Source: Macrostomum lignano (lineage: Eukaryota). Taken from it: 64,000 nt of DNA. The position numbers were made by a program, and so were the translations under genes. Of the stretch, positions 11,099 through 46,874 are shown in pieces; the stretch's first letter is position 1, and every line of letters begins with the position of its first letter. The notes beneath the pieces are model-generated. The model saw only the letters and a list, made by a program, of their open reading frames with translations, was not told where the DNA came from and did not search any database. The DNA lies in NCBI GenBank assembly GCA_002269645.1, contig NIVC01001849.1:144235-208234 (forward strand). Direction: 5' to 3'.

Positions 11099-11773
<675 letters not shown>

Positions 11774-14402: not shown

Positions 14403-15712
14403 ATCCCACCGCTGCCACCAGTGTAATGGCTGTGCCTAATGCTCTCCGCTGCCACCAATGTAATGCTGGTGCCGAATCCCACCAATGTAACCAATGTAAT
14501 GGCCTTGTGGATCCCCGTCTCTTTGGTGATTACTGCTGTTGCCTACTACTTCCTCTGTCTGCCCTCGCTATCTGGCACGGCCGGTAGCTGGCCTGAGTGG
14601 TCTAGCACTATGGTCCGAATTAACCCCTCTTAGTCTCCACTGAGTACAGTTAGATAATAACCGAGTATTGGTAGTTGGGTTGCTGCCACCTTGTAGGTCT
14701 ACAGGTGATATCCTCGACAGGTTACCCCTAGGTAGGCCTACTGATAAGTAGAAAATAAATAAGACAAACAAGTCAGTTAAACGTTTGTTAATGTGAGTAA
14801 CGGTCACAGGCCGATCCTAGAATATCGTTTAATAGCTCAACTGGTGTCGCAGTAACAAGTCCTAACCCTATTAGGTGTCACTGATGTTGCCCAACAGCGT
14901 AGGTTGTAGGCCACGAGACCAGGTCCAGACGGTGTTGAAGGTCTGGCGAGCTGATGACACAAAGACCTGCGGCAGTCTTAATGAGCAAATGGCAGCTGCA
15001 ACAAGGATTTGTTAGCAGGTTATCCCTAGGAAAAGCGTCTAGCGATCTGCCTAAGCTAGTTCATCTAGGAAAAGCATCTAGGAATACTAGCCTTTGCTCG
15101 AAGCCAAGCAGGCGGTCTCCGAAAGGAGATCGTCTCCTGAACGAGGATGGTCTCTTTGGGCCTTCACCTACTCTGTATTTATACTAAAATTCGGGGGTCT
15201 CAGGGCCAATGGGAAGCTCAGAGGCAGTTCCGTGGCAGATCCCATGGCAGTTCCGTGGACTACCCGGAGCCAGGAGCGATCTTGGAGATGCCCATAAGAC
15301 ATCTGCCTCATCATGCAGCCTCCGCATGGCCTGCTGGTACACTGCTTGCATGTTGCGGCATGCAAGGAGTGCACCAAGACCCCACGAAATCCTACCCCGG
15401 GCGGAGAGCTATGCTCTCACTCCCGCTGACTAAATAAGCCTGTACTAAAGGAGAAATATCCCACTGACTAATGTTTCTATTTTTAGCCCATTGCAGACTG
15501 CGCCAGGGGGAGAGGGGGAGAGAGTTTCTCTCCCTGTCCCGCGACAGCTGCACACCTGAGCCTGCACAAGGGAGGGGGAGGAAGGGACAGCCCTATGCCC
15601 AGCTCCCACTGCTGCAGCCCAAGCACTAACTGACTAAGAGGGGATCCCAGGAGCAGCCTATGCTAGCTACGCTGGATCACCACACATGTATTTTTTTGAT
15701 TTTTAGGGTACA
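14403..15712 (-). mobile_element. Second copy of the PBS/LTR remnant
   Basis: +5047 copy of 9356-10665. Confidence 0.5.
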
Positions 15713-16145
15713 GGAAATACACGTAGGATAAAAAATTAACATTAGAATCCTGATTTTCTGACCGAAAAGCTTAATGAATATCAATAGAGCTACGAGGTAT
15801 AAGAAAAGCACAACATATCAACAGATAAACATTGGATTTGCGTCCTATCGAAAGTAATAATTTTTGTGCTGAAAAATCAAAAACTTCTATCTCCGTGGGG
15901 TATTTTTCGGTGAAAAGTGGCCTTCAAAACATTTTCCATGGATTTTGAGTGTCGCGTCTTGTATATACTCGTTAGTTGCTTTAGTTGTCATTGTCCTTGG
16001 TATTAAATTGACTTCAAGCTCCTCTTTATTACTTTTGTAGTAATAGGCTTAGTGTCTTATATCGTTATTATCGACAAATTAATCCTTATTTTTTTTAGTT
16101 CTTCTTTCAGATTAATCTCTTTCAGAGCTGCGCTACTGTTAGTAG

Positions 16146-16820
<675 letters not shown>

Positions 16821-17655
16821 ATCTTTTGCTTTGTCGAGGGGGGTTATCGCGTCAAAACAGGCAAGCAATATGCCCTAGCGAGAAGACGGAGTCTTGCTGC
16901 ATTTTCAAGTTTTCGTCATGTGATCTGTGTTTTAGTGGGCAGTTAAAAGTGTCCAGTTTAAATCTAAGATTTTGCACAGTTGCTACAGAACTTGTGCAAA
17001 GAATTCGCGCACTCGCATGTACGTACACTTCATTCCTAGTAGTTAGCAGGAAAATGGGGTGCACGAAAGCCAATTGCTCGAGCTTTTGCTGTTGGTACAG
17101 CAGTTTGCAGTACAGTTTATACACGGTCAATGGTCATACGCAGGAGTTTGTTTTTTGCAATTTAAAGTTCTCAAAACAACTTTGACGAATAGGCCGCTTT
17201 ACTATTAAGCTGTTTATTAAGTGCGAGCATATCAGTGATACGTGATGCTACGGGCAGATTGACTTACATAATAGCTTAGAAAGTAAGCTTTGTAGTTTCT
17301 GCTGCGCTCAAATGGGAAGTCCTGAAAACATTTCAATGGTGGTTTTATTTTCTATTCTAGAATTTATAGTCCTTGATGAGATTTATGTGCAGGAACTCGT
17401 GCTAGTTCGATTTAAAAACTGAAACGGATAAAAATTTGTTAATTTTTTAATACCCTATTCGGGCGAATCAACTGGTTCGTCAAATTATTGTCAATCCTCA
17501 ATGTTTTTTTTACTTACTGTAAGTCTTGCAGCAAAAATGTGACAAATTTTCAGCGGGATTTCAGCATTGTAGACTGGAGAGTTTGCACTGTTCTATTCGT
17601 GAAAAGCAAAAGCAGTGTTCTCTCCGCCTACTGCTGGCTCGTAACGCAAGCTTGG

Positions 17656-18336
17656 TTACATGAGTAGAGGGGCATAAAAGTTGCAAACTGGAGTATCATA
17701 CATGAGCAATCGTAATCGTGCTAAGAATTGGTCGTAGGAGGCGAACAGCAGGCCGCAGGAGAGTTGCTTCTTTTTCTTCTTGCCGTCGTCCTGCAGCGCG
17801 TGGTAGTGTGCCCGTACAGCCTCGTTGAAGACGGCGTCCAAGTTTTTCCTCATCTTAGCTGAACACTCGACAAAACGGTCGGCTTTGATTTCTTTGGCCA
17901 GTTGTTTGCCTTCAGCTGTGGAAATCGGGTCCTTTACCGCTTCTCCGCCGACTTGATCGTCCCGGGTATCGGTCTTGGTTGCAACGAGAACTACCGGAGA
18001 ACGGCTGAACCCGCCGAAGTGACGCAACTCCGGCACCCACTTGGCTTTTACGTTTTGACAGCTATCTCTGTTATCCACTGAATAGCACAGCAAGAATACG
18101 TTGGTGTCTTTGTAACCCAATGGCCGCAGTCTGTCGTAGCTCTCCTGCCCGGCCGTGTCGTATATGGACAGCCTTACTGCCTTTCCGTCAACTGAAATGT
18201 AATGCGAGCTATCGTCGGCCACGGTTGGCGTGTACTCTTCCGGAAATTTGTTCGATGTGTAGACCAGGACCATGCTGGTCTTGCCAACTGTGCCGTCACC
18301 AACCAGCACTAACTTTATCGTGACTGTGTTCGACAT
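17656..18336 (-). CDS. RhoX3, read-through RhoX copy, 226 aa
   Basis: ATG at 18336 (MSNTVTIKLVLVGDGTVGKT), YTPTVADDS; same 29-aa extension after CGLL as RhoX2. Confidence 0.85.
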   Translation of the reverse strand: MSNTVTIKLVLVGDGTVGKTSMVLVYTSNKFPEEYTPTVADDSSHYISVDGKAVRLSIYDTAGQESYDRLRPLGYKDTNVFLLCYSVDNRDSCQNVKAKWVPELRHFGGFSRSPVVLVATKTDTRDDQVGGEAVKDPISTAEGKQLAKEIKADRFVECSAKMRKNLDAVFNEAVRAHYHALQDDGKKKKKQLSCGLLFASYDQFLARLRLLMYDTPVCNFYAPLLM

Positions 18337-18718
18337 GTTTTGAGGCACTAATGTGCGCTCGAATGTGGTTTAGAACTTTGCTTCTTATAGCCGTAGTAAA
18401 TCAAAGGGAACTTTCTAATAGCTGTGGTCCTTTCGCGCACAGAAGTTTCTGAATTTCTCCGACATGCTGAACAGCTTCTTATACCGGGCGTGCATGCAGC
18501 TAATTGTCTGTTCATCTTCTCATAAACTTGCGTTCTTTAGTTTCTAATTATAACTGAAAATTTCTATAGCTCAACAGTCGTGCATACGAGCAAGTCTGGC
18601 CGCATTGCAGCTTTAATTGAAGCGGATTCGAATAAATACGAGTAGTACAGTCATTTAGTTTTCCTGAGCATTGCAATGCAGCACCTTTAAACTGAATCAA
18701 AAAGTGGGGTATCTGGAT

Positions 18719-19010
18719 CAGGGGTCGGCAAACTCCGGTCCGCGTTCCCACATACGGCCCTCAAAGCGTCTCTATGGCCCTCGGGTCCTTTAAAACTTTA
18801 CAATAGCAATCTGGCTCGCTTAAGGTTAATGTCTGTCCCCTCTTTCCTTTCCCCTCTCCCTCTCCATTCTCTCCCCTATCCCCTCTCCGCTCTCTCCATT
18901 CTCTCGTCTTCCCTCCTATTCTCTTCTCTGTCTTCTTTCTTATCTCTTCTCTCATCCCATCTTTAAATTCACTCTTCTATCATCTATTCCTTTTCCTTTC
19001 CACTCTCATC
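18719..19010 (+). mobile_element. Non-autonomous hAT/Charlie-like element fragment with TC-rich body
   Basis: Starts CAGGGGTCGGCAAACT..CGG.CCGCG (hAT-Charlie-type terminus). CGGCCCTCAAAGC...GTCCTTT.AAACTT.ACAAT.GCAATC plus the pyrimidine tract is homologous to the reverse complement of 41060-41364. Confidence 0.55.
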
Positions 19011-20257
19011 TGAGCCATGAGCTGGATGCTTCATCTGGCCCTTGAAGTAAAAAGTTTTGCCTAGATAAATATGGGATCGTAATACGTATCATGCATTGAA
19101 TGACTAGCAAATCCATCTCTCTACAAGTACTTCTTTGTATTCTTCGACGTTGAAATATCGATCCAAATGATTCTCTAGCAGACTGACGGTGGTTAAAGCT
19201 TTTCTTTGACAGTGCTAACCTTATCAGCTCTTGGCTTGCCAGGATTTCCTCGATTTGCTTCAAAGTTGATCGATGCCCGAACCCACCCTACCGATTGATA
19301 AGTCACCCCCAAAAAGTTTGAAATCCCTGTAAGCAGTGCATGATGAGCTGAGCAGGAACTGAACTGAAGTGAAATTCGATCAGGTCGGAAGAGGTTCACA
19401 AGGACAATTTCTGCACAGCATGCATCATTGCATTCGCTCACTTTTCTGTACATATAGATAGCTCAAACCAGCATAGAATACAATCTCAACTTTTGGCAAC
19501 TCTGACATTTGTACTGCCAGCCTGCAATTTCTGAAATACTGGTTACTTGATAGTTTGTCTGTTCGCTATTCGTTGACTAAAGTCTTCTCGAGTTCAGGCC
19601 TATGATTATAGTTGAAGAAATTAGCACAGTCATTATCTTGTCTACCCTTGCTGTGTATTTTTCTCTTTCTTCATTCTCTCTGTGGTGTGACTTATCTTTG
19701 TTTTATCAAATGTACTGACTCTATTTATCTGTGACTTTCCAAATTGCAACTAAGCATAACACGTAACTTCACTCAGTCAAATGCTTCATTTCTTCGAAAT
19801 GGTGTCTAGAGCCATAATCCGAGCACTGCATGATGCATTCAAAATTCAACGCACTAGTCTCAAGAGATTAGCCATTTTTACGAAGTATGCCATATAGTCT
19901 ACTTTTGATTACTACGCTCGTATCATATTCTCTATGATACGAGCTCGACAGGCTGAACCAGTGAGAGAAAAGTGAGAATACTTTGCTAAAAAGCGGATAC
20001 AGTCCGTGCATCTCAAGGATGTGCAATGTTCGGTATTTCGTCACGTTTATTGTTGCTATGTGGCTGTCAAGAGCGCAAGAAATGTATTGCCCATTCATTC
20101 AGTTAATACTGTAGTAGCTACGACGCGTACTCAGCGTGAGCACTGTACGAATATATTTTGGGCTGAGATTAGCAGTAATGTATAAAATTACACACTAAAG
20201 CATAGTTAACAAACGATTTAAAAAAATTTAGTTTTTTACAGAAACTTCTCAGTGGAG

Positions 20258-20884
20258 TTACAGCAGAGTGCAAGGTCTCGTCTTATTATTTTTCTTCTTC
20301 TTGCCGCAGATGCCTTTAGCCATTAGGTGGGCTCGCACAGCCTCCTCCATAACCTGCTGCAGGCCGTGCCCAGTCAGTGCTGAACACTCTACGTACGTTT
20401 TGGCGCCAATTTCTGTCGCCATTGCTCGTCCCTCGCTGCTGTCAACCATGGTGATATTTTGCCGTTTCAGATAGTCGATGGCAGCCGAGTCAGTACGAAG
20501 ATCGGCTTTGGTGGCCACTAAGATGATGGGCACGCTTGGGCCATAGTGCCCCAGCTCTGGGCGCCACTTATCGCGCACATTCTTGAAGCTGTTCCGGCCG
20601 TCAACTGAAAAGCACACTACGAACACGTCGGTGTTGGTATAGCTGAGTGGTCGCAGTCTGTCGTAATCCTCCTGGCCTGCCGTGTCCCACAGCTGCAATC
20701 GCACTGGCCGGCTGTCTACAGTGACGTCGTACGAGAAGTTGTCAACAATCGTTGGCACATAAGTCGTCGGGAAGCCTTTCTTCATGTAGACGCTTAGCAT
20801 GCAGGTCTTGCCAACGGAGCCATCGCCAACTAGAACGACTTTGAGCGTATCTACTCTGTTGCTGCTGTTAGCGTTATTAGACAT
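20258..20884 (-). CDS. Rho-family GTPase, 208 aa, CAAX CTLL, intronless
   Basis: [57 protein letters not shown]. Confidence 0.95.
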   Translation of the reverse strand: MSNNANSSNRVDTLKVVLVGDGSVGKTCMLSVYMKKGFPTTYVPTIVDNFSYDVTVDSRPVRLQLWDTAGQEDYDRLRPLSYTNTDVFVVCFSVDGRNSFKNVRDKWRPELGHYGPSVPIILVATKADLRTDSAAIDYLKRQNITMVDSSEGRAMATEIGAKTYVECSALTGHGLQQVMEEAVRAHLMAKGICGKKKKNNKTRPCTLL

Positions 20885-22118
20885 TTGCTATTGCCTTTGG
20901 CCAGCCACTCTAAACTTTTGGGGCTGGGGGAGTCTAAGTTGCAACTCGTATAGAGTATAGAGCGAACCAGATGAAGATAGAGCAGAGTGTGTCTCGTTTG
21001 GTTTATTTGGAAGGTTTCTCGTGGAAGCAAAGTAAATAGCACAGTAATGGCATATGTTCTGCAAATAGCGTTCCTGCTTTTATGTGCAGTGCGCAAGAAA
21101 TTCGGCTTCTTTCTTCACCAGCGTACTGGCTGCGCCCGTGTAGAGTGCCGCAGGCGAGCGGTTTGTCCAAACCCTCTTCCACTCTGTCCCTGTCTGTACA
21201 CTCGAGAAAGGCATACCTCGGGGCTCTTTCAAACAGAAAACTTTTATTTTGGCTCTGACTAATTAGGTTAAATTTAGCGTAAGAAGTCTGTCCATTATTT
21301 TGTACAGCATCTATCATTTAAACTTTTTTTTCTGAGTAATCATGACCCCTCGAGCGAAGATGCTTGCTGCTACTGAGTGCACGTTGGTCTTGAGAAAGCT
21401 CTCTCTTTTCTCTCTTCTTTCCTGTCTTTTCTTTGATAACTTAAGGAATATTGAGTCGTTACTGTTTGCTTCATTTCTTAGCTTGAAGCTTAGATGACAA
21501 GAATGTTTACTTGGAGATGACATTTCCTAGTCAAATCAAGTTCTCCATTTAAATGTAGACAGAATAAAAACTTCTCTTAAAACTGTCCATTTTTTTCTAG
21601 GCTTGAATAGAGTTAAAACATGAAACAATTTAAAGCAACGGAGAAAACACTGACCCGTTTGTTTGCGCCTGTAGCTGCAGTAACATTTAAATGCAAATTT
21701 GTTATTGTCATTTGCGCATCTTATCTCACAACTAAGCATCGGGCAACAGTCGCTGCCGCCCTTGCTCCGCAAACTGCGCAGAGGCTACATGCTGTTTCGC
21801 TTTTTGGGGATGCAATGAGCCGTTTTGGTTTTCGAGGAGCGGACGAGCAAGCAGCAAGTCAGGAAAAATTAATTCCGCACAAAATTTCCTAATTTAGTTT
21901 ATTTTATGCAAACGCGTGCGTACGACGAACTAAACGCATGTCCGCCAACAATTAACGACAGAGTATATGTATTATTCTAGTTCTGCTTTAAAATTGTATG
22001 CACAAACACAAAGATGCTGAAATCCATGGTGAAAAGTCTACTGAAAGATTGGAATGATTAGTGCGTCATGATTTCTGTAAATTTATGGTCCATATGTTCC
22101 TGTTTTCCAGCTTAGTTC

Positions 22119-22700
22119 TTAGAGAACGCTGCAGCTAGGGTTTGGCTTCCTGTGCGGCTTTGTTGGCATCATCACTGCTCGAATGGCCTCATCGAACACA
22201 GTTTTAAGTCCCATCTGCATGCGAGCTGAACACTCCAGGTACTTAACCGCGTTGATCTCCTTGGCTAGTGCCAGGCCCTGCGCCTGAGAAATCGGAGCCT
22301 GATTCTTGCTCTTTAGTTTATCAATGGTATCCTTTTCCTCCCGAAGGTCCATCTTGGTTCCAACTAGCACGATTGGCTTGTTAGGACAGTGGTGGCTCAC
22401 CTCCCGGTACCATTTGGCTCGGACATTCTCATAGCTGGCTGGGCTTACTAAGGAGAAGCAGACCAGGAACACGTCCGTATGCGGGTAGCTCAGCGGCCTC
22501 AGCCTGTCGTAGTCATCCTGGCCTGCCGTGTCCCACAGGCCTAAGTTGATGGGCTTGTTATCGACCATGACGTTTGCTGAGAAGCTGTCGAACACTGTTG
22601 GAATGTACTCGCTTGGAAAGGTGTTGGTTGTGTAAGAAATCAACAGGCAGGTCTTGCCGACACCTCCGTCGCCGACAACAACGCACTTGATTGACTGCAT
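22119..22700 (-). CDS. Rac-like GTPase, 193 aa, CAAX CSVL, intronless
   Basis: [55 protein letters not shown]. Confidence 0.95.
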
Positions 22701-24124
22701 GGCTATGTTTTATCAGTAGCTGTGTGCCTGTTCGCAACAGAGGAAGGTCACTTTATGCTGAATCAAGCCTCAGTCTGGGGTCGGCTAGAGCACTGAGCCA
22801 TTGCTTTTTCAACGCACAATAGGCTATAAATGCAGCACAGCTGGAGGGCAAGGGGAGGGTTTCAAATTTGAGTTTCAGATTTGGTCAGCTTCTAAAAATA
22901 GTACAGCAGTCTCTCGGGGTAAGGTGGACGTTGTAGGTCACTGGGTGGGTACCTGGGAGAGTGGGGTACTCGGAAAACATTCGAGTCTTCAACCAATCAG
23001 TGAAAAGAGCTTGAGGTGTTACCGCGACAAAATTGGCCTGCGTCAGCCTCAAAGCGTACTAGTTTTTCTCTTCAACTAATTATTATTTCGGCTGTTTTCG
23101 TACGAGTGTACGCTTTCAGCGAATGCTAAATCTCAATATAGAGATAAAAAAGAGAGCAAAAAAGCTGGGGCTTATGCCAGTCGCACGAGGTCTAGCGTCT
23201 CACAGGCGTTTACGAGTCGCAATTTACATCCGGTTGAGAGAGCAATTTGGGCCGAGTAGTTTAGTTATGCTCTTACCGGGAGTAAACAAGCTAAAACCTG
23301 GAGTTTTAGCAGCAGTTAATCTGATTCTTTACCTATTGCGAAAAGAATACGCTGGATAGTGAATACACGTTACGAGTAGTAATCAATTCTGGGTGAATTT
23401 TATTTATGTGAATAAATTTTTCAGGTCTGAAGTATTCAAAACTACACGTAGCGACGAAAGTTCGTTTACGCTTATTACTCGAATAGTAGCTTTCTAATCG
23501 GTCGCATTCAAGACTTGTTATCTAGAAAGTTTACTTATAGTTTATTTATAGTGTACTTATATTTTACTCAGTTGCATCACTTAATTAAATGAAGTTTTTC
23601 ATGACTAGGCCTGCCAACAAAAGTCCAGATTTTTTAGCAGCTAGATTTTCTTGCCTAAGCTGGATCTGAACTTGTTAAATATGAAAATATACTGTTCCAT
23701 TGGTTAATTAATCTCGAACTGTTATATATGTGTGCCGAAGCTAGTTCATATTAGTTGTATATTGCCTGAATGATGACAATTTAACGTCCGGCCTAGCTGA
23801 TAACGATTTTATCGCTTGAACACTCCATTGCTTGCGACTGTACTTGAAGGACGAATGAACCAAACACTAAATAAGTTTGTACAGCCACCGCAAAGGATAG
23901 TGCTCTAACCTTCGAAACTTACCGTGAATATACAGTAGAGCTGAGATAATGGTCAATCTGCATTTCTTTCCCTGACTGAGGCCAAAGTGGCCCTGTATCC
24001 GAAGTAAACAACCAACGGATGCTAATTAAAACATAGTTAAAACTTGGACGCACCCGCTACATAAAGTTTCAACCCGAAATTCGATTAAAAGACACTGCAG
24101 CATTTGGCAATAAGGAAACCCCCA

Positions 24125-27100
24125 ATGCCACGAAAGTGGTGCTCCTGGTCATGGAGCCCGACGCATCAGGAGAGTTCACCGGAGCCGAGCCGAGTTCAAA
24201 CCAGCATCAAGTGCCTTGCAGTCGGAGACAGAGCCGTTGGCAAGTCCTCGCTGTTACTTACTTTAGCTCACGAAGGAGCAAGGCTGGTTTTTTTAATCAA
24301 ACAGAACTCATCAACCATTTTGGAACGAACAAGGAAGCTCTTCTTGCTGGATATAGGGTGCTTCGAAGGAGACTCAAACAGACAGGTGAACATTGACTAC
24401 TCCCAAGCAGATGTGCTTCTCGTATGTTTCTCTCTAGTCGGACAGGGCAGCTTTGAGAGCGTACAGACAAGGTGGCACGCTGAGTTGAGTCAACGCTGTC
24501 CAGAAATTCCAATCATTCTTGTTGGAACGAAGCTGGACCTGCGAAACGACAGCTCAACAATCGTCAGGTTAAAGGAGAGGGATCAGGCACCCATAACAAA
24601 TCAGCAGGGCATGACAATGGCAAAGAAAATCAATGCAATGAGTTACCTTGAGTGCTCCGCCCTGACTTGTGATGGTCTGACTGAAGTCATCGGCGCAATC
24701 GTAAGAAGCAGTGTTTCGGGATCTCCAAGAGATTCAGTCACAGTGGCACGGAAACCAAATCACAGAAGGTACGCTTGTCAATAAAAATTTAATTTTAAAG
24801 TATATTCTTCGATAGTAAAAGTCATGGAATCAGTAAATATTAGTAAATCTCATATTAACTGACGCGAATACTTGCATTGTAAACGTGATAGAGTGGCCAT
24901 CACATAGTTACATGTGAAAAGCGTGATTCAACTAGACAGATATGTAAAGATATTCCAAGAGAAAAGTTTCCTAAGACATAAACATCTCCAGGACCTTAGC
25001 TGAGGTTATCAGTACAAAGTTGCCATTGGTACGGTATTGCACCTGATGAATTGTTTCTTCTCAGTGATTTCTTCAAGTTACTCTGGAAACTTGCACGACT
25101 GATTTCTAGGAGGCTTCTCGGCATCAGGTCTTTCTTCCGCTCGATAAGGGAATCCTGGAAAATGAACCCAGTGTTCAAACTAAGTTATGATTTGTAAGTA
25201 ATACTCGAAGTCTTCATAAAAAATTTGCAGGCCCCTGCTATTGCCAGATATCCGCAATTGACTTTGTGCTTTCAATTTATAGTTCCATAATCGATGCACC
25301 AACTGAAGATTGCGACAATGATGACTGTGTATACGATTTACTTCAGGATGCAGCGACGGGTATTTTGACTGCGTGAGTAATCCAACCATTTTTCCTCAGA
25401 TGCAGAGCCACAGTTCAACGTTGAAAATAATCAAACACATTTTTAGTTCGGAAGCTGAACCCTGTTCGGAATACGAGATTGTTGATTCGGACGATGAATC
25501 GAACGGAAACAACGCTAGTTCGAACAATCGACACTATGAGAAGACCGAACTCAAGCACGCAGTTCAAACTGATTTTCTACAGCAGAGGGATGACCTTGCG
25601 GAGAACAGTGCTAATGGGTGAGCAGGAAATCCTTTGTAGACAGAGCCGCTGTAGCTCGTACTTCCCCCTGTAGTGTGTGTGTATTTAGGGATCAACGGAC
25701 TGGGCATAACTGTTTGTCACTGTGCTAGCTTCTGGCGTACTTGCCATGCAGAGCACAAAGCCCTAAGCTAACTAAGTTGTACAATGTAAACGCACATTTT
25801 TACAGCGAGGAGGAAAGAAAACATGCTGATTTTACGTCAACAAAAATGGACAAAGTATCGGAGCAAGAGTTAAGGCAACCAACAACAAAGCGGAAGATCG
25901 TGCTGATCGGTGACGAAGGCGTGGGCAAAACCTGTCTGATTTTGTCCCATGCCAAACGCATCTGTCCTGCTGACTATGTTCCTACTGAAGCTGACGATTG
26001 TATTCCTAGCTCGGATGGCAGCGCCGACCTCGGTCTGTGGGACCTCAGCGGCTCGAGGGACTTCGACAGAGTGCGGCCAGAGAGCTACGGACTGGCGGGC
26101 GTCATCCTCATCTGCTTTTCCATAGCCAGTCCATCCACTTTCGACAGCGTGCTTAACCGCTGGCGGCCGGAGGTGGCTCGCTACTGCCCTGACGCCCCAA
26201 TTATTTTGGTTGGGACCAAAGCAGACTTGCGGACTGACCCAGTCGCTCTGAAGAGGTTGCGACGCATGAGACTAGTCCCGATAGCTCCAACCCAGGGCGA
26301 TGACCTGGCCAAGGAGATCGGCGCTGTCGCCTATCTGGAGTGCTCGGCCTTGCATCGAATCGGAATAGACGATCTCTTTAAAAAGGCTTCACAGGTTTCT
26401 TTCAGGCAAGTTTGGTTTTCGATGATTTTTATGAATTTCTTTGCAAGTCATTCTGAAATCTAAAAAAATCAAGAATAAGCTAGAGTTGATTGGTTTGATG
26501 TTATTACGATTTCACAGAATTTTCTATATTTTCTATATCCATACACTAAAATGGTCTTTTCCGCTAGAAATATTTAATCAGGGTTCAGCTTTGAGTTTTA
26601 AAGTTTGTCTTAATCTCTGTAAGTCTTTGAACATTTGAGTTCTTAAATCTTAAGTAATCGATACTGAATCGGCCGATATAAATATCCACGACAGACAGGC
26701 AGATGATTGAATTTGAATTTTTCTGTGGTTGAATTGCACTACTGCTCAATGTGTTATGTTCGCTGGGATAAAAAAAGTGCTTTCAGACATACAAGCCATA
26801 AATCTCATATTCTATCGATACTAGATTTATTCTTAGTGTGATTATTATAGCTTTTTCCAGCCATTTTAGGGCATTTGCGCATTTAAATTAATCCTTAAAG
26901 ATGCTTCCCAAAGTAATGGAGCTTTTGTCTTTGGTACCAAGGCTGGCATGGCACTGCAGCATTAATATTGGTCCAACAGGCATCAATTTGGTCCATAGCG
27001 GCTATGAAACCCTATCACGAGTTTGTAATGCAATTTTTCACTTTACCAGTGCAAGGTGACGTCAAAAATGCAATCTGCTCAACTATAACAAAGAGCATTT

Positions 27101-28388
27101 TAGTATGGTCGAAACGTTGCTTTAATCAGAAGCCCTTGATGTTCGTTCGATAGCCTAGCGTATGGCCAACGATTCAAGACCAGATTTTGCACCTCTTCAG
27201 CAGTTGCAAATGAAGCATTGTTTTCGTCCACATTGCTTGATAGTCATGCCTAAATGAAAATCTAGGGGTGAAACTATAGAGCTATGGACCGGATTGATGC
27301 TTGTTGGACCAAATTAAATGCAGCTGTGCCATCCTTGCTACCATAGACAAAAGCTCCGTTACATTGGTAAGCATATCTTGGATTCAATTAAATGCGTAAA
27401 AGCCCAAATGAGCTGCAAAAAGCTTTATCATATTTAATCAGTATCGACTACGAACGTGAAAGAGATAAGAGATCCGCGGCACAAACACTCTTGTTTTATG
27501 CGTTTATGGATTCACTTAAGTTGATAATTAGCTAAAGCTTTCCTCTCAAATTTACCATCCAGACGGGATGACGTCTACGCACATGTATACAGCGAAGCGA
27601 AGTCCTCTCACCCTAGAGTTCCGCGGCCGCCGCCTCTGCCGCCGCATCCGAATGAATTCTACAAGGTCACATCGCCGCAGGGTCTTTGTCTTGTTGTGAA
27701 TATTTACAAATACGATAAAGGCTTCAATCTCGAAAATCGACTTGGATCCGATTTAGATGTAAAGCGAGTAGAGAGCGTCTTTCGCAAGCTCAACTTTCAG
27801 GTGACAGTGCTGGAGAATCTGAAGTGTCACGAGATTGCAAAGCTCATGAGCAAAATAGCAATCTCCGAAGAAACTGAGTCACACGGCTGCTTCTTCTGCT
27901 TTTTGATGGCCCACGGCTCAAACGGACGCATCTACGGAAGCGATGGCGAGTCTTTGGAGATTCGCTCGATCCTGGAGAGATTTCGCGCCAACCAGTGCTT
28001 CAATCTGCGTCACAAGCCGAAGGCGTTCTTCATCCAGGCATGCCGTGGAAGCGACAATGAGTCCGAGAAAGATACTCAGGTGGACAAGTTTGTCTCTGAC
28101 AACACGGGATTGCACTGTCCCTTGGACAGCGATTTCCTGTTGTGCTACGCCACAACCGAGGGCTACTCTGCCCTTCGGGACAAAGAAGGTGGTTCACCAT
28201 TCGTGCAGACCCTGTGCGATGTACTTGAAGAGCGACACTCAAGTGAGCACCTGGTGGATATCATGACTAACGTAAACTGTCGGCTCAAGGAGAACCCGAT
28301 CAAAGAGAAGAGCCAAAATTTGTATTCCGTAACCGAGACTGTCACCAGGTTGTCCAAGAAGTTTTTCCTTGATCCAACTCTCGCATGA
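24125..28388 (+). CDS. Predicted fusion gene 1: pseudo-Rho domain + atypical Rho domain + caspase, ~746 aa; join(24125..24768,25447..25617,25806..26405,27563..28388)
   Basis: Donors AG|GTACGC (24769), GG|GTGAGC (25618), CAG|GCAAGT (26406, GC type). Acceptors TTTTTAG (25446), TTTTTACAG (25805), TTTACCATCCAG (27562). All phase 2; total 2241 nt, open. Caspase motifs YKVTSPQGLCLVVN, ENRLGSDLD, FLMAHG, IQACRG (28035-28049), DFLLCYAT..SALR..GSPFVQ. Start codon uncertain. Confidence 0.7.
26847..27426. mobile_element. MITE-like element with ~150-bp imperfect terminal inverted repeats, in gene 1 intron 3
   Basis: TAGCTTTTT.CAGC..TTT.AGGGC...GGAGCTTTTGTCT...TGGTCCAACA.GCATCAAT.TGGTCCATAGC is inverted at ~27278-27426. 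Confidence 0.75.
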
Positions 28389-30239: not shown

Positions 30240-30410
30240 AGAGCCCTAACAACCCAGTTATTCTGGTTGGATCCAAGCAGAACTTCCCAGAGCGACAAGA
30301 CAACCAATAAAAATGGAGAGAGAAAAGAAGTGGACACCGATTTCTAGACGATAAGCGGAAAAAATTAGCTACTAAAATCAAACAAATATTTTAAGAGCTC
30401 CGCACCTATG
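30240..30410 (+). pseudogene. Decayed Rho-GTPase fragment (G4 region to helix 4)
   Basis: Translates as NNPVILVGSKQNFPERQD..*..KKLATKIKQIF*EL, compared with [14 protein letters not shown]...KLAKEIGA.YLEC. Confidence 0.5.
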
Positions 30411-30739
30411 AGTTTGACTACTTATAAGAGTTTGACTCAAGAGTGTTTTCAAAAGAGCCCGTTGAAAACGATACCGTGACAAGAATCGCTAAAGAGCCAT
30501 TGCAAACAACTCACTAGTGACTCTTGTGCGTCTGGGGCGACTCTTGTGACTTTTTAACAACTAAAACTGCGACGGAGAGGTGACTGTTGCATCACAAGCG
30601 CATCACGTGAGTTTTAGAATCGTAAAAGAGTCGCGAAAAAGTCGTCCAATAATCGTTGTGCTGGCGCTTAAGTTCCTACAACTCGGTAGGCTAGTTTAAG
30701 TGCAATTAGGGTTCATAGGCTAATACTGAGTGTTCCTCG

Positions 30740-31544
30740 CCCGATGAAAACGGTACCTAGGCCAAGAAGTGTCCCGGAATCACTTGCGTCGCCTCAGAGT
30801 CGTTTCCGACGTGTTGCAGATGACAGGTCAATTAGGAAAGAAGTGATTCGAAACGACTCTAAAACGACCAGATGAATTCGAGTCACATTTCCGGCGTTTC
30901 AGAGGCGTTCTGCAGTCGCATAAGAGTCGCAGAAGCTCTTCAGCGTTGCTGTAGAATCTTGAGCGCATCACTTCTGAGCCGATGAGCATGCGTTTTCTAT
31001 TCGCCAAAAAATGGCCGGTAGTAACGACTCTGTAACGCGTCCATAACGCCTACGAAGTGACGCACTAACGATTCTACAGTGACGCTAAAGCTCTTCTTCT
31101 GCGACTTTTTTGCGACTGCAGAGCGCCGCTGAACCGCCGGAAATGTGAGTCTAATTCATCAAGCGATGCAAATGCGCTTCATTCACAACTCAGCGATTAT
31201 AATGCAACTCTGGAACGCTTCAAGTATGACTCTACGTCCCCCATAATTGTTAGGCTCGTATACCGTCGCCCCAGAGTCACTAGATTCGCGTCAGAATCAC
31301 TTGCGTCGCCCCAGAATCAGAGCCGCAGACAAGCCGCAGACAAGTTTCAAAGTGATTCTGGGGCGACTCTTAGACGACTTTTTGGCGACTTTTACCGTAG
31401 ATGTCGTCGTTTTAGAGTCGTTTAGAGTCACTTCTTTTCTATTTGACCTACTCTGTATGTCATCTGCAACGCGTCTGAAACGACTCTGGGGCGACGCAAG
31501 AGACTCCGGGACGCTTTTTGGCCTGGGTACCGTTTTCATCGGGG
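30740..31544. mobile_element. Foldback/MITE-like element with nested inverted repeats
   Basis: Outer arms 30740-30871 / 31405-31544 (CCCGATGAAAACGGTACC..GGTACCGTTTTCATCGGG); inner arms 30876-30958 / 31071-31157. Related GCGACTC/GAGTCGC motifs extend to ~30470. Confidence 0.7.
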
Positions 31545-31896
31545 AGGTCACAAGGATTGTCTTAGCTATAGCGCTTCTCAAAGAATAAAGTTAGAATTAG
31601 AAATTTAATTTTAGAAACTTCGATCGTTTCACCCTATGCCACTCTTTACCGAACTATTCGTTCGGGTTCTTATTCACACTCCGTGCTTTTAGAAGAAGAC
31701 GTAAGTTTTCTGACAAGCAAACCTGGCTAGCTCCTATATAACCTATGAATCAACATTTCATTTGCATGCTACTACTCGTATAGTGTCTAAGCACTGGGAG
31801 GCCGCCTCGCCTTACTTGCCCAGCTACCTTACGCGGGCACCGTTGAGACAAAATCAGATCCTTGCCGATGGGGTATTTAAATTAACTTGACAACAG

Positions 31897-32450
31897 GTAC
31901 CATCAGGTGACATCCCCAGGGCCTAGAGCTTTGGTTATTAATCTCTGTGAATTCAATCAGAATGAATAGAGACGGCTCACAGACATGAGAGCCCGTGTGC
32001 ACGAGAATTTGAAGTGCAACTAGATTGCTGAACTACGTAAAAACTGCTTCGCACTCATCTCTAAGATTAAAGATCACGGATGCTTTTTCTGCTTCATAAT
32101 GGCTCACAGAATGCACGATCGGATCCATGGTAGTGACGGCGAGCCTCTAGAAATTCAATCCATCCTGGGCCGCTACTAAGTTAGAGAACGTACTTGGTCG
32201 ATCCGAACTACTCGATGGACAGCGAATTCTTGATGTGCTACACCAACACTGAGGACTACATAGCTTTCAGAGATGAGATCAATTTATTCAGGCCATGTGC
32301 GACCTCGAGAAGGCGCATGGAAGAGCGCATATCGGACATGCGGACTCATGTAAATAAGCGCCTCAAACCCGGACTGCGGCAGGAGGCAGCAAAGTTTTTG
32401 CAGTCTCGCAGACGGCGTTGCAGTCATCAAAGAAATGCTTTCTACATGTA
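31897..32450 (+). pseudogene. Caspase pseudogene, paralogue of the fused caspases
   Basis: YHQVTSPGPRALVINL...*; DHGCFFCFIMAHR..RIHGSDGEPLEIQ; MDSEFLMCYTNTEDYIAFRD. Has stops and frameshifts, and the QACRG segment is absent. Confidence 0.8.
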
Positions 32451-32764
32451 AATCCAACCCCTGGCTGATCTTGATGGCAGTCTCCAGTGACTCGACTCTA
32501 TTAAGTTTAAAAGCAGACTTAATTAATAAAAGCAGACTCATGTAATTCAACTCCGAAGCAATGGGTCAAGAGTTTTAATTCTAATGGTGCTCTTAATTAA
32601 AATGTTTAATTTTTAGTTTTTCCTCGGAAAGTTTTTTTTCAGAAAACTACTCGACATTCTTCGTGACGGTTGTAGACTTGCTCACTTAGTATGCTACTCG
32701 TACGAGTAGTAACTTGCAGTATATTTTCTTTGATACATAATTCTGTAAAACATAGGGGGGACTT

Positions 32765-33243: not shown

Positions 33244-35593
33244 ATGAGAATGATCAAATGTGTTATTGTTGGCGACTCTACCGCTGGCAAGACCTGCATG
33301 ATTGAGACCTACGTAAATGGCTCAATGCCAGACACGTTTATTCCAACAATTTACAAAACGTACTCAGCTCGGCTGCCCATGGAATCGGAGTCTATCGAAC
33401 TGGCGCTGACAGACACGGGAGGCAGTGAAGGCTACGACACTCTCAGACCAGTCGCCTATCCGCAGACAGACGTGTTTATCATCTGCCTTGACTTGACCAA
33501 GTCAGCCGAACTTGTGCTTGGCAATGTGCGTACAAAGTGGTACCCGGAGTTGAGCCACCACTGCCCCTCAGCACGCATTATTTTGGTTGGAACAAAGCTT
33601 GACATGCGAACAGGTTTGAAAATAAGCGAGACCAAGGAAGAAGATGCTGAGAAAAACCTTACAGCTGAGCAAGCCAACGAATTCGTCAAGGAAATCAATG
33701 CGGCAAAGTACATGGAATGCTCCTCAATTACTCAGCAAGGATTAAAAGAAGTGTTCGAAGAGGCCGCTCGCTTAGTTCTTAACTCTTCTGACGCTCGCAA
33801 TGGCAAAAAGAAGAAAAATGAACACCACGGGTGCGTAAAGATAGTTTCAGCCACTGTTTGAGTTCACTTGTAGGTTAAAAATGTTGTACATGTGTATCAA
33901 GAATCTTTTATAAAGGGCCAACAGAAGTGAAAGTTATCAGCAAAGAGCTTTGAAAAATAATCAAAGCTCTTTAGATTCTGGCTTGGGTACTTCTCGAGTT
34001 TTTTCACAGATTTAAAATGCACGAGCTATCAAAATGCGTGAGCGAGAACGCTTTCAAAAACAAGATCGCCACACACTACTTAACAACTTGCAATAATTTC
34101 AGAGATTCCAAGAAAGTCGTTTCGTTCCTTCATTCGCTATCGTCGTCGAGAAGGAACTCTGAAACGTCTATCAAGTAATTTGCTGGAGCACACTTTATTC
34201 CTGAAATATATTCATTAAAATATTTTGCAACAAGATTTCCAATGAACCCTTGCAGGCAAAGTGTTCTTTCCGATGGTGGAACCAAAGATTCCGAGACCGA
34301 AACTTCACCTGATGAGCCGAGCATTAAGTAAATACTCTAGCTCCTCTTCTGGAGTAATTTTTGTTTTAAAATTCTGTTAGAATTCTTTTTAATTAGCCAC
34401 TAATACGAGTTTTTTGCACGAGCTTATTTAAAAAAACTTGCAGATCTCCATCATCGATTAAAGCCTTTTTCCGCGGTTTACGCCCTGGGAAAACATACTC
34501 GTACAATATCGCATCGTACGACTGTTTCTTAAATTTGAAATTATTCAGAATAATAGCATTCCTTGCCAAAACCAGAGCAGTGGAAAATGTATCCCATATG
34601 CTCATATTTTTTAGACAACAGAAGTCGCACGATAAGAAAACCAAAGCTTCGAGTGAAACTTGCGAGCCAGCGGACACTTCATCCGCTGAAGTTTTGGATC
34701 AGCCCCAACAGCCTGCTTCGAGGTAAGCTTTTTCTAACTGGAACTCAAGCTATGAAGGATTGCAGACACAGTTATCTGTCTACGGGAATGCGTAATCTTC
34801 CCTCTTAACAATGTCTTGCAGTACACAAGAAGCCGTGAGTCCCGAGCTCAGCGAAGACGAGCAGCCGACATCCGAAACAGAAAGTGACGACGAAAGCTCG
34901 GACACGGAGTCCGCCAGTGCTCAGCGAGAGCCAGTCTCGGAAAACCTCAGAGAGCCTAGTTCTCGAGTTGATTATCCGGAAACTATTGTCGTGTTTCGAA
35001 CCGCCGAATCAAAGACGAAGAGTGACACAATAACATTAAAAGTCGTCATAGTTGGAGATGAAGCGGTTGGCAAGACCAGTCTGCTGACCGCATTCGCAGA
35101 GGACCAGTGTCCTCAGGAGTATGTTCCCACAGAGACCGACGACTGCTTTGCCGTGGAGGGTTCACTGGCTGGAAGCCAACTGTGTCTCCGCTTGTGGGAC
35201 GTGAGCTGTGCGGAGTCCTTTGACCGCTTAAGGCCTCTGCGGTATCGCCAATCAGATGTGTTTATCATCTGCTTCTCCCTCATCAATTCTGCTAGTTTCG
35301 AGAATGTACGGGCCAAGTGGTACCCGGAAGTGAGCCGTCATTGTCCTGAAAAGCCATTTATCCTGGTCGGAACGAATTCCGATCTGCGCGATGACCCAGA
35401 GACCATCGACAAGCTGGAGGAAAGGAATCTCGTTCCAATCAGCGTGACTCAGGGCGAGCAGTTGGCTAAAGAGATCGGTGCTGAAGTGTATCTAGAGTGC
35501 TCCGCTCTGTGTAGAACAGCTGTGGAAGACATCTTTAGACAGGCGGTATTGGCTTCCGTGAGAAAAACAGAAAGCAAAAATCATCACGGGTAG
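33244..35593 (+). CDS. Predicted gene 3: tandem double Rho-like GTPase with acidic Ser-rich linker, ~536 aa; join(33244..33830,34103..34174,34256..34327,34615..34722,34822..35593)
   Basis: Donors GG|GTGCGT, AA|GTAATT, AA|GTAAAT, AG|GTAAGC; acceptors ATTTCAG, CTTGCAG, TTTTTTAG, TCTTGCAG. All phase 2; internal exons of 72, 72 and 108 nt are open; total 1611 nt. No CAAX. May continue from GG|GTAGAT at 35590. Confidence 0.7.
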
Positions 35594-37283: not shown

Positions 37284-40200
37284 ATGAGTTCAAACAAGAT
37301 CAATTGCCTCGCCATCGGCGACGAAGCGGTTGGCAAGTCCTGCCTGATTGACTGCCAATTAGGCATAGAATTCCAGCGCATGCACATCCCCACTGACTGC
37401 TTTAAGAAACACAGCATGGAGAGCACTTTAGAGGGACACACATTTCAGATCACACTGTGGGACTCGCCCAGTAAGGACGAATGCTTTGTCGACATGCCGA
37501 GTTACCCAAAGGCGAATGTTGTGCTTCTCTGCTTTGCCATCGATTGCCGAGCGAGCTATGAAAACGTGAGAAGAAAATGGTTTAAAAGGTGCAGAAAGCT
37601 CTTCCACAAGGCGTCCTTTATTCTGGTTGGAACCAAGCGGGACCTGCGAGACAGTTCGACATCGATTAGTCAGTTCGAAGGCCGTGATCTGCGAAAAATT
37701 ATCAACGCTGAGACTTACAAAGAGTGCTCCGCTCTGAATCCTGAGAGTGTCCGGGAAGTTTTTGAAGAGATTATTTTCACGAAGTACAATCAGACTTTGT
37801 CAAAAACAAACAAAAGGTACGTGTTCATTTTACTTTTTATTACTTTTCGTCTGATATGCCTTACGCTGAATATTTTACTACGCTCTCCTAATATTCGTTT
37901 CCTTTAAACTTTATTGCAGCAGGGCACTAAGTATTCTCCCGTCAAAAGCCATCTTTTGGAGAAGAACTAAGAGTTCGAACGAGTACAGGTATCTTTTATA
38001 TTAGAATGGCTACGTGTACGAGATGTTCTTGGTCTCGAATCATTTGATTGCGTCTTTGATTCAGAGAGTATCGACCATATCTTATCTGATACTGCGTGAC
38101 AATATTCTCTGTGCAGATTTCACAATTTGCCATTGTAGCATCCTTTAGTCATTGGTGTCTCAAGTTCATCAGTAAATTGCACTGATGACCTTCACGAAAA
38201 TGATAGGAAGAGCAACGCAAAAGCGCGAACAGTCAATACTCTCTTTATCTGTCGCAAACAAAACAGTAAATTAAAATCATTTTCTTAGAAAAAATTAACC
38301 GTGAAAAAATAATCATATTTCCTCAATAGTGCCCAAAAAAACTGATGAATGTGAGTATCTACAACCCGATCCGATTCGAGCGGCGACACGTGATCAAGGA
38401 ATCGAACCGTAAGCTTAAAATTTTTTGGTGTTCAATCTCGACAACTTGTTTAAGTTTGCTCAGTATACTACTAGCATACTACATGTACTCAAAAGCTCCA
38501 GTTGGGTGCGCTGACAAAACAATGCTGTTCTGCTCTGCTTAAAAAAATCTGAAAAAAATTTAAGCTCCCGTTTACTTTCCATCACTCATATGAGAGGCGC
38601 CGCAACTGCGGTATTTATTTACAGACTTATACCTATCAATAGCCAGTAGTAGTTTTCCATTGATTAAAAGAGTTTAAAAGCAAATTTACCAAAGTGGAGT
38701 TCAAAAAAGGCGGAACAGAGTCACCGGAAAACGCGTCTGACTCTCGCGATGCGACCTCCCTCTGGTACCTCATTTGATTAAATGAACACCCACATCAACT
38801 TGGCGCTTGCACTCGTAAATTCTCGTCGTGCTTTTCACACCCTTGTGGGCAACCCCCCCCCCACCCTATAGCACAGAGAGTGCACATGCCTGACAATTAG
38901 AAAGTCAAATTGCGGGCAACCCCCCCCCCTATAGCACAGAGAGTACACATGCCTGGCAATTAGAAAGTCAAATTGCGGGCAACCCCCCCCCCTCCAAGGC
39001 ACGGAGAGTTGCACATGCCTGGCAATTAGAAAGTCAAATTGCGGGCAACCCCCCCTCCAAGGCACGGAGAGTTGCACATGCTTGGCAATTAGAAAGTCAA
39101 ATTGCGGGCAACCCCCCCCCCTCCAAGGCACGGAGAGTTGCACATGCCTGGCAATTAGAAAGTCAAAGGGCCGCTTTACAAATTTGCGTACAGAATGAGT
39201 TCAGGAGTCAGCGGAATCAGAATTGCCTCAGCGCCGGGTTGTGGGACGATTTCGCACATCACATTCCCACGTCACACAAAGCGATGCGTCAGGGTGCCCA
39301 CAGCCCTCCTGCAAATATGAGCGTTCTTCGTTATTTCTAAAAAAAGTCGGTCTTCCCTAGTTGAGGATCCCCCATCAGTTACGGTGCTTGAAAAATGTCG
39401 AAATAGGGTGCCTACGTAGTCTCGCACCCAATGCCTGCTGAATGTCCGGAAGTTTCGCCTAGAAGAAGGCCGTTAAAGTCAGAGACAATAACGAAATTTG
39501 AAGGCTTGGCAAGGCCGCACTGAGTTGCAGCGCTTGCTCGTAATTTCTGCCTAGGGGGTGCACTGAATGCATTCTGAGGGAAAAAATCCGGACCTTCTGG
39601 CAAAATCATTGAATATCTTTGAATATCATTGTTGAATATCATTATTATTGAATGTCATTGAAATCTCGGACGATTTCGAAGGCTAGTGACATGAATCTTC
39701 TTTGACCATGTGCGAGAAAAATCTAGCCATCCTTGTGAATTTTCACTGTAGCAAAAATGTCTGGCTGGATCCTTAACAGAAATTGTTTTTTACTCTTCCT
39801 GTTATTAAACATAAAATTCGTTTTCTTCAAATGAAATATTTCTAGAGATTTTGATTATCCTTTGGCCGGAGCAACTGGAGGCGCCGATCCAGACATCTAT
39901 ACGTGTCCGTCTATAGATTTATACAACCGGCATGGCTACATGAAGGCGGATGTTCAGGCAACAAATCCGTGAGAAAAAGAAATTTTATTTTACGAGCTAC
40001 ATTTGACTACTCGCAATAAAACATAATAGGGGCGCTTCACAAGAAATTTCACAACTTTGAAAACCCGTGCTAGTCACTCCCGCAATCCAAAATTTAAAAT
40101 AACTTCGCGATATGAAAATTTGAGCTTGTGAAGTTTCACTCTTCAAAAAAGTAACAGATAAGACTTTTCCAGGATGTGAAATTTCAAACTGGCGAATGCG

Positions 40201-46737: not shown

Positions 46738-46874
46738 GATTCGAGGGTCGATATTCGAGGCCACGTCCCTCTAGGAAACCCCAAAGCGAAGCTCAGGCCT
46801 CTCATTTCTCCCGCAAACCCGTTTTCAACCCACTCCCTGGAGGATGGCGACAAGTCCCATTTTCCAGGAATTCA

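Follow-up and report, generated by a model that had tools for sequence, protein, structure and literature searches.

Caspases are usually activated via death-fold prodomains of the CARD or DED type. A 2024 survey of lophotrochozoan caspases described ankyrin (ANK) caspases in flatworms, one caspase with a kinase prodomain in Macrostomum lignano and a ROC caspase in the annelid Owenia, and reported no further unexpected prodomain in platyhelminths (PMC11463336). According to this survey, ANK caspases are restricted to parasitic flatworms, and the kinase caspase is the only unusual caspase of M. lignano (PMC11463336). Here, a gene of M. lignano is described in which the exons for two Rac-derived GTPase domains precede an exon for a complete caspase domain. 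This gene, termed gene 1, is located at 24125-28388 (plus strand) of a 64,000-nt window that represents the final 64 kb of contig NIVC01001849.1; all coordinates refer to this window and equal the record position minus 144234. The favoured explanation, to which a probability of about 0.72 is given, is that gene 1 is genuine, transcribed and selected and encodes a single polypeptide of ~750-800 aa with a tandem GTPase prodomain before the caspase. Gene 1 has already been deposited as a hypothetical protein. Its Rho-caspase architecture is undescribed, and no description of a Rho/Ras-caspase fusion in animals was found in the literature searched. The tandem Rho-type GTPase prodomain is an undescribed addition to the caspases with unconventional prodomains; lophotrochozoans have exchanged death-fold prodomains for other modules, and gene 1 extends their list with a module that the survey lacked in flatworms (PMC11463336).

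The four exons of gene 1 (24125-24768, 25447-25617, 25806-26405 and 27563-28388) add up to 2241 nt encoding 746 aa, and the only stop codon of the joined sequence is the terminal one at 28386-28388. All three introns are in phase 2. The first exon encodes a 27-aa N-terminal extension followed by the first Rac-derived GTPase domain (G1), as judged from Pfam matches, tree and motifs. The second is an acidic linker exon with phase 2 on both sides. The third comprises the end of the linker and the second GTPase domain (G2). The last exon begins with a Pro-rich PPLPPHP segment that is followed by a complete p20/p10 domain, and it contains an alternative in-frame acceptor at 27617. The donors read, in order, AG|GTACGC, GG|GTGAGC and CAG|GCAAGT, and the acceptors TTTTTAG, TTTTACAG and CCATCCAG. 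The third donor, at 26405, is thus a GC donor and not a GT donor, and intron 3 (26406-27562; 1157 nt) is an AT-rich GC-AG intron that differs by 2.2% from a homeologous copy. An initial annotation of the window had proposed these four phase-2 exons with an open frame of 2241 nt. Exons, phases and open frame were found as proposed; the GC donor had gone unmentioned, and at least one junction differs in the deposited isoform, so that this first description of gene 1 as a whole is confirmed in part.

In the translated product, Pfam detects the domain order Ras, Ras, Peptidase_C14, with the Ras profile matching in two stretches (3.1e-52). An AlphaFold2 model based on an alignment of 22 sequences (mean predicted local distance difference test (pLDDT) score 72.7) predicts three well-folded domains that are separated by disordered linkers at residues 201-297, where pLDDT is below 50, and 485-510. 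Linkers of genes 1 and 2, the latter being a paralogue described below, contain acidic Tyr motifs that follow the pattern [DE][DE]x(0-2)Yxx[ILV], namely SEYEIV, DDCVYDLL, DDVYAHV and EEYVYDYI (25199-25617, 27563-27600 and 40771-40908). These could be short linear docking motifs or a mere effect of composition, the alignments not being significant.

The protease part is a caspase by profile, with residues 512-723 of the product matching positions 2-221 of the 233 positions of Peptidase_C14 (2.7e-48). It aligns to caspase-7 and caspase-3, with an E-value of 1.6e-37 for caspase-7. The catalytic His-Cys dyad is intact (LMAHG and QACRG, compared to LLSHG and QACRG in caspase-7), and gene 2 carries the same dyad. 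The equivalents of the S1 pocket residues Arg179, Gln283 and Arg341 are also kept, in NRLGSD, QACRG and SALRD of gene 1 versus VRNGTD, QACRG and YSWRS of caspase-7. Two candidate autoprocessing sites, TQVD and FVSD, lie within the intersubunit loop at residues 635-654, which is predicted to be disordered. Neither a death-fold prodomain (CARD/DED), at E-values up to 0.01, nor an Ank family was found among the Pfam matches of the gene 1 product. Like the initiator caspases (caspase-2, -8 and -9, Dronc and CED-3), gene 1 has a long N-terminal region, a complete p20/p10 domain and an Asp-containing intersubunit loop, and this layout supports induced proximity as a working model. Unlike these enzymes, it has no CARD or DED, and its protease is most similar to the executioner caspases 7 and 3.

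The two GTPase domains differ in their degree of conservation. G1 is 47% identical to a Rac gene at 4530 of the same window (E 2e-41). It retains the P-loop, TKxD and SAL motifs and has lost switch I Thr35, the glycine of DxxG and Gln61; the Gly12 and Gln61 positions are occupied by Arg and Phe. Its switch regions have low pLDDT values and are poorly defined in the AlphaFold2 model, and G1 is likely a pseudo-GTPase as far as its motifs indicate. For G2, Rac1 is the best match in PDB, with 165 residues aligned (2.4e-49) and no gap through the Rho insert. This domain retains its nucleotide-binding motifs, namely Lys and Thr of the GxxxxGKT P-loop, Thr35, DxxG, TKxD and SAL, as well as the Rho insert. 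Gly12 and Gln61 are substituted (G12E, Q61S) and the effector loop is altered (V36E, F37A). All six GTPase domains in gene 1, gene 2 and a third locus of the window (gene 3) lack Gly12, Gln61 and a CAAX box. Neither the spliced protein nor the read-through of any unspliced GTPase exon in these three genes contains a CAAX box. In gene 1, the splice donor after G1 occupies the site of the polybasic-CAAX tail, and unspliced read-through ends with KPNHRRYACQ and a stop codon.

Rnd1-3, RhoH and RhoBTB are atypical, GTPase-deficient Rho proteins that are constitutively GTP-bound and regulated outside the GTP/GDP cycle; in RhoBTB, the Rho domain is part of a larger protein and has no CAAX box. G2 resembles these proteins in that the Gly12 and Gln61 equivalents are substituted and the nucleotide pocket is otherwise intact. 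In contrast to them, the gene 1 domains are not orthologous, bear no Rnd-like CAAX/farnesylation signal and have a protease as partner. The ROC caspase of Owenia fusiformis likewise carries a Ras-superfamily GTP-binding domain N-terminal to the caspase (PMC11463336), and the Roc profile also matches the gene 1 product (2.2e-23), as a match secondary to Ras/Rho. A COR domain was not among the Pfam matches of gene 1, and the product thus does not qualify as a ROCO protein. The Owenia enzyme belongs to the CARD-type 'caspase-Y' group of another phylum, whereas the gene 1 domains are arranged in tandem, are of the Rho/Rac type and carry a Rho insert. This points to an independent origin, the two being set apart by the published description of the Owenia protein.

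Transcript support for gene 1 comes from the deposited annotation. In GenBank, NIVC01001849.1 carries a gene whose coding sequence (CDS) has the same ends as the gene 1 model (start 24125, stop 28388, plus strand). The gene annotation of this assembly, Mlig_3_7 (GCA_002269645.1), rests on transcript evidence only, using STAR-mapped RNA-seq, StringTie, TACO, a de novo transcriptome, TBONE and open reading frames (ORFs) from TransDecoder; TBONE splits transcripts at experimentally observed trans-splice and poly(A) sites (PMC5730564). One transcript model links the ATG of the first GTPase to the stop codon of the caspase in a single ORF. Since the GTPase-caspase CDSs of gene 1 and gene 2 are both found in this RNA-derived annotation, their splice sites are not due to chance. 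The initial annotation had named spliced reads across the gene 1 junctions as the decisive evidence. The transcript-derived CDS does join the GTPase start to the caspase stop, albeit as second-hand evidence, and its product has 804 aa instead of 746. The protein of gene 1 itself was not returned from either of two large protein databases; as the gene is annotated in GenBank all the same, such an absence is no evidence against annotation or expression.

The deposited product, which has Ras, Roc and Peptidase_C14 matches, exceeds the product of the four-exon model by 58 aa (174 nt). As a single exon, the additional 174 nt can be placed at 25020-25193 or at 25199-25372, both within intron 1. The region 25020-25446 has an intermediate GC content, with values of 0.40-0.42 for 25020-25372 that lie between those of introns and exons; its predicted coding frame outscores the other two frames, and its divergence from the homeologous copy is low. 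From exon solutions, GC content and frame score, the segment 25020-25372 (plus strand), part of intron 1 in the four-exon model, probably carries the missing 174 nt. The extra residues are most likely encoded by an added exon within intron 1, and the junction 24768/25447 is the likeliest to differ from the deposited isoform because single-exon solutions exist there.

Two further proteins of M. lignano, P0001 (UniProt) and P0002 (GenBank BOX15_Mlig000293g2), map to the window with ~100% identity and represent the paralogue, gene 2. As deposited (P0002, 757 aa), gene 2 extends over 39940-44521 on the plus strand in seven exons (39940-39968, 40771-40908, 41612-41677, 41777-42397 with G2, 42551-42670, 42744-43274 with a repeat, and 43753-44521 with the caspase). 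Its introns are of the GT-AG type in phase 2, and this model reproduces P0002 exactly. P0002 begins at the small 29-nt ATG exon at 39940 and contains one GTPase domain, the repeat linker and the caspase. The repeat (42925-43228) consists of 6.8 copies, 98% identical, of a 45-nt unit encoding the 15-aa sequence TEVYPSQEPTGPAEQ, and has no counterpart in gene 1. Upstream, at 37284-37816 (plus strand), tree and motifs identify a first GTPase exon with the most degenerate domain and a donor, AG|GTACGT, that is homologous to that of gene 1. This exon is outside every GenBank model; joined in frame to 40771, it gives an open frame of 925 aa. P0001, with four GTPases and a caspase tail, was discarded as evidence, as frameshifts are patched in this model and the 45-nt repeat is translated in the wrong frame. 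The same domain order had initially been proposed for both genes. The open 925-aa frame agrees with this proposal; the deposited P0002 has a single GTPase, and only the weak P0001 joins the upstream exon. While gene 1 has a documented double GTPase, that of gene 2 is no more than plausible. Between the first GTPase exon and 39940, a 63/129-nt tandem repeat is located at 38843-39167 (5 copies, 91% identical). A repeat-overlap filter was used for the GenBank submission of the annotation (PMC5730564), and overlap with this repeat may be the reason why transcripts with the first GTPase exon were filtered out.

A single polypeptide would not be produced if the model were chimeric, with GTPase and caspase exons on separate mRNAs of a polycistronic or read-through unit and the caspase translated from a short 5' exon. 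M. lignano is rich in polycistronic precursors and operons, and intron 3 permits many chance in-frame splice combinations. The deposited gene 2, by starting at its small ATG exon past the first GTPase, indicates that GTPase exons are sometimes excluded, and a stand-alone GTPase gene of 244 aa has been deposited at 33244-34331. Nevertheless, this explanation is unlikely. TBONE cuts at spliced leader (SL) and poly(A) sites, yet one CDS from 24125 to 28388 was left uncut; moreover, co-transcription would not suffice, as a continuous ORF demands true removal of introns. The loss of CAAX and catalytic residues in both GTPase domains fits internal domains and not free Rho proteins, and the linkage of G2 to the caspase is present in two paralogues that have diverged to synonymous saturation.

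Translation of the caspase exon on its own would also require a start codon. The frame of this exon has no ATG, GTG or TTG upstream of 27696, and its first Met is located past beta1 and the Arg179 equivalent (NRLGSD), which bears out the initial statement on the position of this Met, from which it had been concluded that the exon does not work alone. SL trans-splicing was considered as a source of a start codon. The SL of M. lignano ends with TTGCATG at its 3' end (PMC8629364). When it is joined at 27563, at 27617 or at 43753 of gene 2, its final two bases and the first base of the exon form a TGA in the caspase frame; the SL's own ATG is read as ATG-ACG-GGA-TGA at the caspase acceptors. Trans-splicing at these sites therefore yields no caspase, and this source of a start codon was rejected. 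A stand-alone caspase appears unlikely from the reading frames. An unrecognised short ATG exon like the one at 39940 of gene 2 may serve the caspase, and the deposited CDS argues against this as the main form. For the favoured single polypeptide, gene 1 illustrates that, in a genome with redundancy and trans-splicing, an unusual fusion can be validated by transcript models together with homology.

The history of the fusion was analysed with neighbour-joining trees of the individual domains with bootstrap values. Genes 1 and 2 form sister pairs both with their caspase domains (91%) and with their second GTPase domains (98%), the latter being joined by the second domain of gene 3 at 91%. Such positional pairing, domain by domain, is the expectation from duplication of an already fused gene. 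The trees support one ancestral fused gene that was subsequently duplicated, firmly for G2 and caspase and moderately for the first GTPase domain, for which the pairing reaches 66%; the initial claim that the architecture predates the duplication holds to the same extent. Exon boundaries were compared as well. The donor after the first domain reads AGA-AG|GTACGC in gene 1 and AAA-AG|GTACGT in gene 2, so that the homology of this boundary, proposed earlier as R/K-AG|GTACG, is borne out. A homologous CCAG|AC boundary had also been proposed for the caspase acceptors. Both indeed read CCAG|ACG in phase 2; the gene 1 acceptor is located 32 codons 5' of the YxVTSPQG motif and the gene 2 acceptor 6 codons, which leaves their positional homology uncertain.

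In the caspase tree, genes 1 and 2 cluster together with ANK caspases (78%) within a wider clade (100%) that includes protein kinase (PK) and LRAT caspases. The N-terminal modules in this clade are ankyrin (P0123, P0177, P0193, P0288), ankyrin plus kinase (P0135) and LRAT (P0162, P0176). The published ANK and kinase caspases (PAA56209.1, PAA46841.1, PAA47029.1; PMC11463336) belong to the same M. lignano clade with 78-100% bootstrap support. They share with genes 1 and 2 the [FY]YxVTxPQG motif, a phase-2 intron just upstream and a long non-death-fold region in place of CARD or DED. In contrast to them, the prodomain of genes 1 and 2 is a Rac-derived GTPase, two of them in gene 1, and the caspase domain of the ANK genes is interrupted by an additional intron. 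Contrary to the survey (PMC11463336), GenBank and UniProt hold several ankyrin-caspase proteins (P0123, P0193, P0288) and two LRAT-caspase proteins (P0162, P0176) from the free-living M. lignano. In four ANK, ANK-PK and LRAT caspase genes of M. lignano, exon mapping places a phase-2 intron 3-7 codons 5' of [FY]YxVTxPQG. This shared intron upstream of the caspase core argues that the caspase cassette with its phase-2 acceptor is older than the GTPase fusion, and the diversity of prodomains among M. lignano caspases looks like a product of exon shuffling.

A Pro-rich motif is found as RPPPLPPHP in the caspase exon of gene 1 (27620-27650) and as QPPVVPPHP in the linker exon of gene 2 (42744-43274), with a shuffle p of ~0.01. 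The shared PPxxPPHP is only suggestive; it may indicate that gene 1 has lost an intron or that gene 2 has gained one. In gene 1, the RxxPxxP sequence may be a docking site of the SH3 type. Between the linker exons of genes 1, 2 and 3, homology could not be established (shuffle p 0.03-0.8). When the caspase domain alone was used in a word-index search, 7 matches were obtained, none of them with a new architecture.

The GTPase domains are most closely related to Rac-like genes of their own cluster (45-53% identity), and the neighbouring Rho/Rac cluster is the likely source of these domains. The locus displays how such fusions form, with Rac genes beside a caspase cassette, phase-2 introns, a donor replacing the CAAX box, and living, dying and partial copies next to each other.

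Evidence for constraint was obtained from two comparisons. Between genes 1 and 2, the proportion of synonymous differences (pS) is 0.77 for the caspase, 0.70 for G2 and 0.79 for G1 and thus saturated, and the respective proportions of non-synonymous differences (pN) are 0.31, 0.27 and 0.43. With saturated dS, a proper ratio of non-synonymous to synonymous substitution rates (dN/dS) is not estimable, and the contrast between pN and pS is usable instead. Both genes keep open frames and catalytic residues, unlike a decayed third caspase copy at 31892-32460, which provides a neutral contrast. The second comparison was made with a second copy of the locus on NIVC01000686.1, which is 98.6% identical and spans gene 1 up to 27253. 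Against this homeolog, a single one of the 600 nt of the third exon with G2 is changed, compared to 23 of 1036 nt in introns 2 and 3, which additionally carry indels (Fisher p = 4e-4). For all exons of the four-exon model the difference is 3/1415 nt compared to 27/1714 nt for introns (p = 5e-5). In all four exons of gene 1, codon-usage scores are positive in the correct frame. A genuine fusion that is maintained by selection is supported by these sequence comparisons. The initial annotation had argued for selection rather than chance splice sites in two well-diverged copies; the pS values of 0.70-0.79 confirm the divergence, and the transcript-derived CDSs, a pN far below pS and the contrast between exons and introns agree with selection.

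Gene 1 could also be transcribed and nevertheless lack a function, as a young by-product of rampant tandem duplication in a hidden-polyploid genome, its frame having stayed open by chance or by gene conversion with the homeolog. The cluster does contain the dead caspase copy and a GTPase pair without a caspase, the switch motifs of G1 are gone, and recent conversion is suggested by stretches without any difference from the homeolog. In addition, all three differences from it within exons are non-synonymous; they are confined to the disordered linkers, and none affects a folded domain. Decay is improbable in view of a frame of 2.2-2.4 kb that is open over 4-5 exons, of caspase catalytic and S1 residues and G2 nucleotide-binding motifs that are all intact, of the pN values well under the saturated pS, and of the codon-usage scores.

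From the observed gene structure, domain content, residue conservation, phylogeny and constraint, a mechanism involving GTP locking, a recruitment role and proximity activation can be inferred for the functional single polypeptide by analogy. Its order is a degenerate Rac-like G1, a disordered acidic linker, a Rac-like G2, a proline-rich linker and a complete caspase-3/7-like domain. The fusion would have originated within the tandem cluster of ordinary Rac/Rho genes, when Rac copies had their CAAX box and stop codon replaced by a phase-2 donor and were joined to the phase-2 acceptor of the caspase cassette. In sister genes, the same cassette is joined to ankyrin, ankyrin-kinase or LRAT modules. 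Duplication of the fused gene would then have given rise to gene 1, gene 2, the decayed copy and the caspase-less copy. In the protein, the tandem GTPase region would substitute for the CARD or DED prodomain of initiator caspases. As Gly12 and Gln61 are lost and the nucleotide-binding motifs are kept, G2 may be permanently GTP-bound and act as a fixed docking or dimerisation module, with G1 as a pseudo-GTPase scaffold. Binding of a partner or clustering would pair two caspase domains, which might lead to autoprocessing at TQVD and FVSD and possibly at the Asp-rich sites DSDD and RRDD of the linkers. Transgenesis and RNA interference are available for M. lignano, so that control of the caspase by the GTPase and the process it serves, be it cell death or another, are directly testable.

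The Rac-derived domains might, in another interpretation, be an integrated decoy, i.e. baits for Rho-targeting microbial toxins or effectors. Once bound or modified by these, the domains would set the caspase free or cause it to dimerise, and the cell would die, by a logic similar to that of the pyrin inflammasome or of integrated decoys in plant nucleotide-binding leucine-rich repeat (NLR) receptors but acting in cis. The GTPase domains probably derive from adjacent ordinary Rac genes, and G2 keeps an intact nucleotide pocket and switch I Thr35, which is a common toxin target. The family is lineage-specific and tandemly expanded with birth-and-death turnover, as is frequent in immune genes, and the sister caspases bear other binding or enzyme modules (Ank, kinase, LRAT) that could be baits. 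Were this true, the locus would be an invertebrate single-polypeptide analogue of pyrin-type Rho guarding, and the Ank, kinase and LRAT caspases would be further baits of one innate-immune family. This interpretation is highly improbable, as it argues by analogy, and V36E, F37A and the loss of Gln61 remove some of the known toxin target sites.

Several points weigh against a genuine and selected single polypeptide. The junction between the third and fourth exons requires a GC donor, and many other in-frame pairs of donors and acceptors are possible in intron 3; the junction 26405/27563 is preferred on the basis of phase and homology, as read from the sequence, and not on uniqueness. The extra 58 aa of the deposited product have no unique placement, since a wider enumeration yields 17 canonical solutions, of which intron 1 accounts for 12 and intron 3 for 5. 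Transcript support for gene 1 was read from CDS range, product length and Pfam matches alone. About 7% of M. lignano transcripts are polycistronic precursors (PMC5730564), and in such a species an assembly of the StringTie type may chain adjacent genes. The first GTPase domains of genes 1 and 2 pair with the moderate bootstrap value given above. For exon 1, comparison with the homeolog is uninformative, as 23548-24809 (1.26 kb, including non-coding flank) is identical. When 1.84 billion representatives were scored with the full-length query, the best 150 included no protein from outside M. lignano that combines a Rho-type GTPase with a caspase; within these 150, both domain types occur together only in two M. 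lignano models from the gene 1/2 locus. GTP binding, dimerisation and protease activity of the gene 1 product are predicted functions. The inter-domain geometry of the AlphaFold2 model is not confident (predicted template modelling score (pTM) 0.40), and no structural mechanism was drawn from this packing.

Upstream of gene 1, the region 4521-22709 contains eight conventional single-domain Rho/Rac genes or copies on either strand, identified by similarity and motifs. The complete ones have intact GDGxVGKT and DTAGQE motifs and CAAX boxes (CDLL, CGLL, CTLL, CSVL); one Rac gene is located at 22119-22700 on the minus strand. A tandem duplication of ~5.05 kb at 7500-18400, with copies that are 98.5% identical, contains a Rac-like gene (plus strand; 11168, 16215) and a Rho-like gene (minus strand; 8230, 13277, 18327). 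The Rac copies at 11099 and 16146 end abruptly behind PITHL, suggesting that they are truncated or interrupted by an intron. The end of NIVC01000540.1 (1-3347) represents a third copy of this neighbourhood. Its similarity stops at position 23816 of the window, 309 nt upstream of the ATG of gene 1, and the remaining 3.3 kb of this contig end show no GTPase or caspase similarity. The break could reflect an insertion, the absence of gene 1 from that copy or a break in the assembly.

Downstream of gene 1 follows the decayed unit (30242-32460, plus strand), which consists of a GTPase remnant at 30242-30328 and the caspase pseudogene at 31892-32460. The latter has three in-frame stop codons and a frameshift, its Arg179 region is deleted, and His-Gly is changed to His-Arg. 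Gene 3 (33244-35557, plus strand) encodes two atypical GTPase domains at 33244-33831 and 34820-35557 with no caspase downstream; in GenBank, it is represented by 33244-34331 alone, with a product of 244 aa. A protein of 786 aa (P0003, from an ENA contig) combines a hydrophobic segment at its N-terminus with three Rac-like domains in tandem, one of them with an intact DTAGQE motif, and contains no caspase; tandem Rho-domain proteins therefore also occur beyond the gene 1/2 locus in caspase-free form. The region 3' of gene 2 contains transposable elements at 46180-51155, 55714-57351 and 60775-63599 (minus strand). These comprise a long terminal repeat (LTR) retroelement gag-pol with aspartyl protease, RVT_1 and integrase, an ORF for a TNP/THAP9-like transposase, and a non-LTR element with RVT_1 and RNase H.

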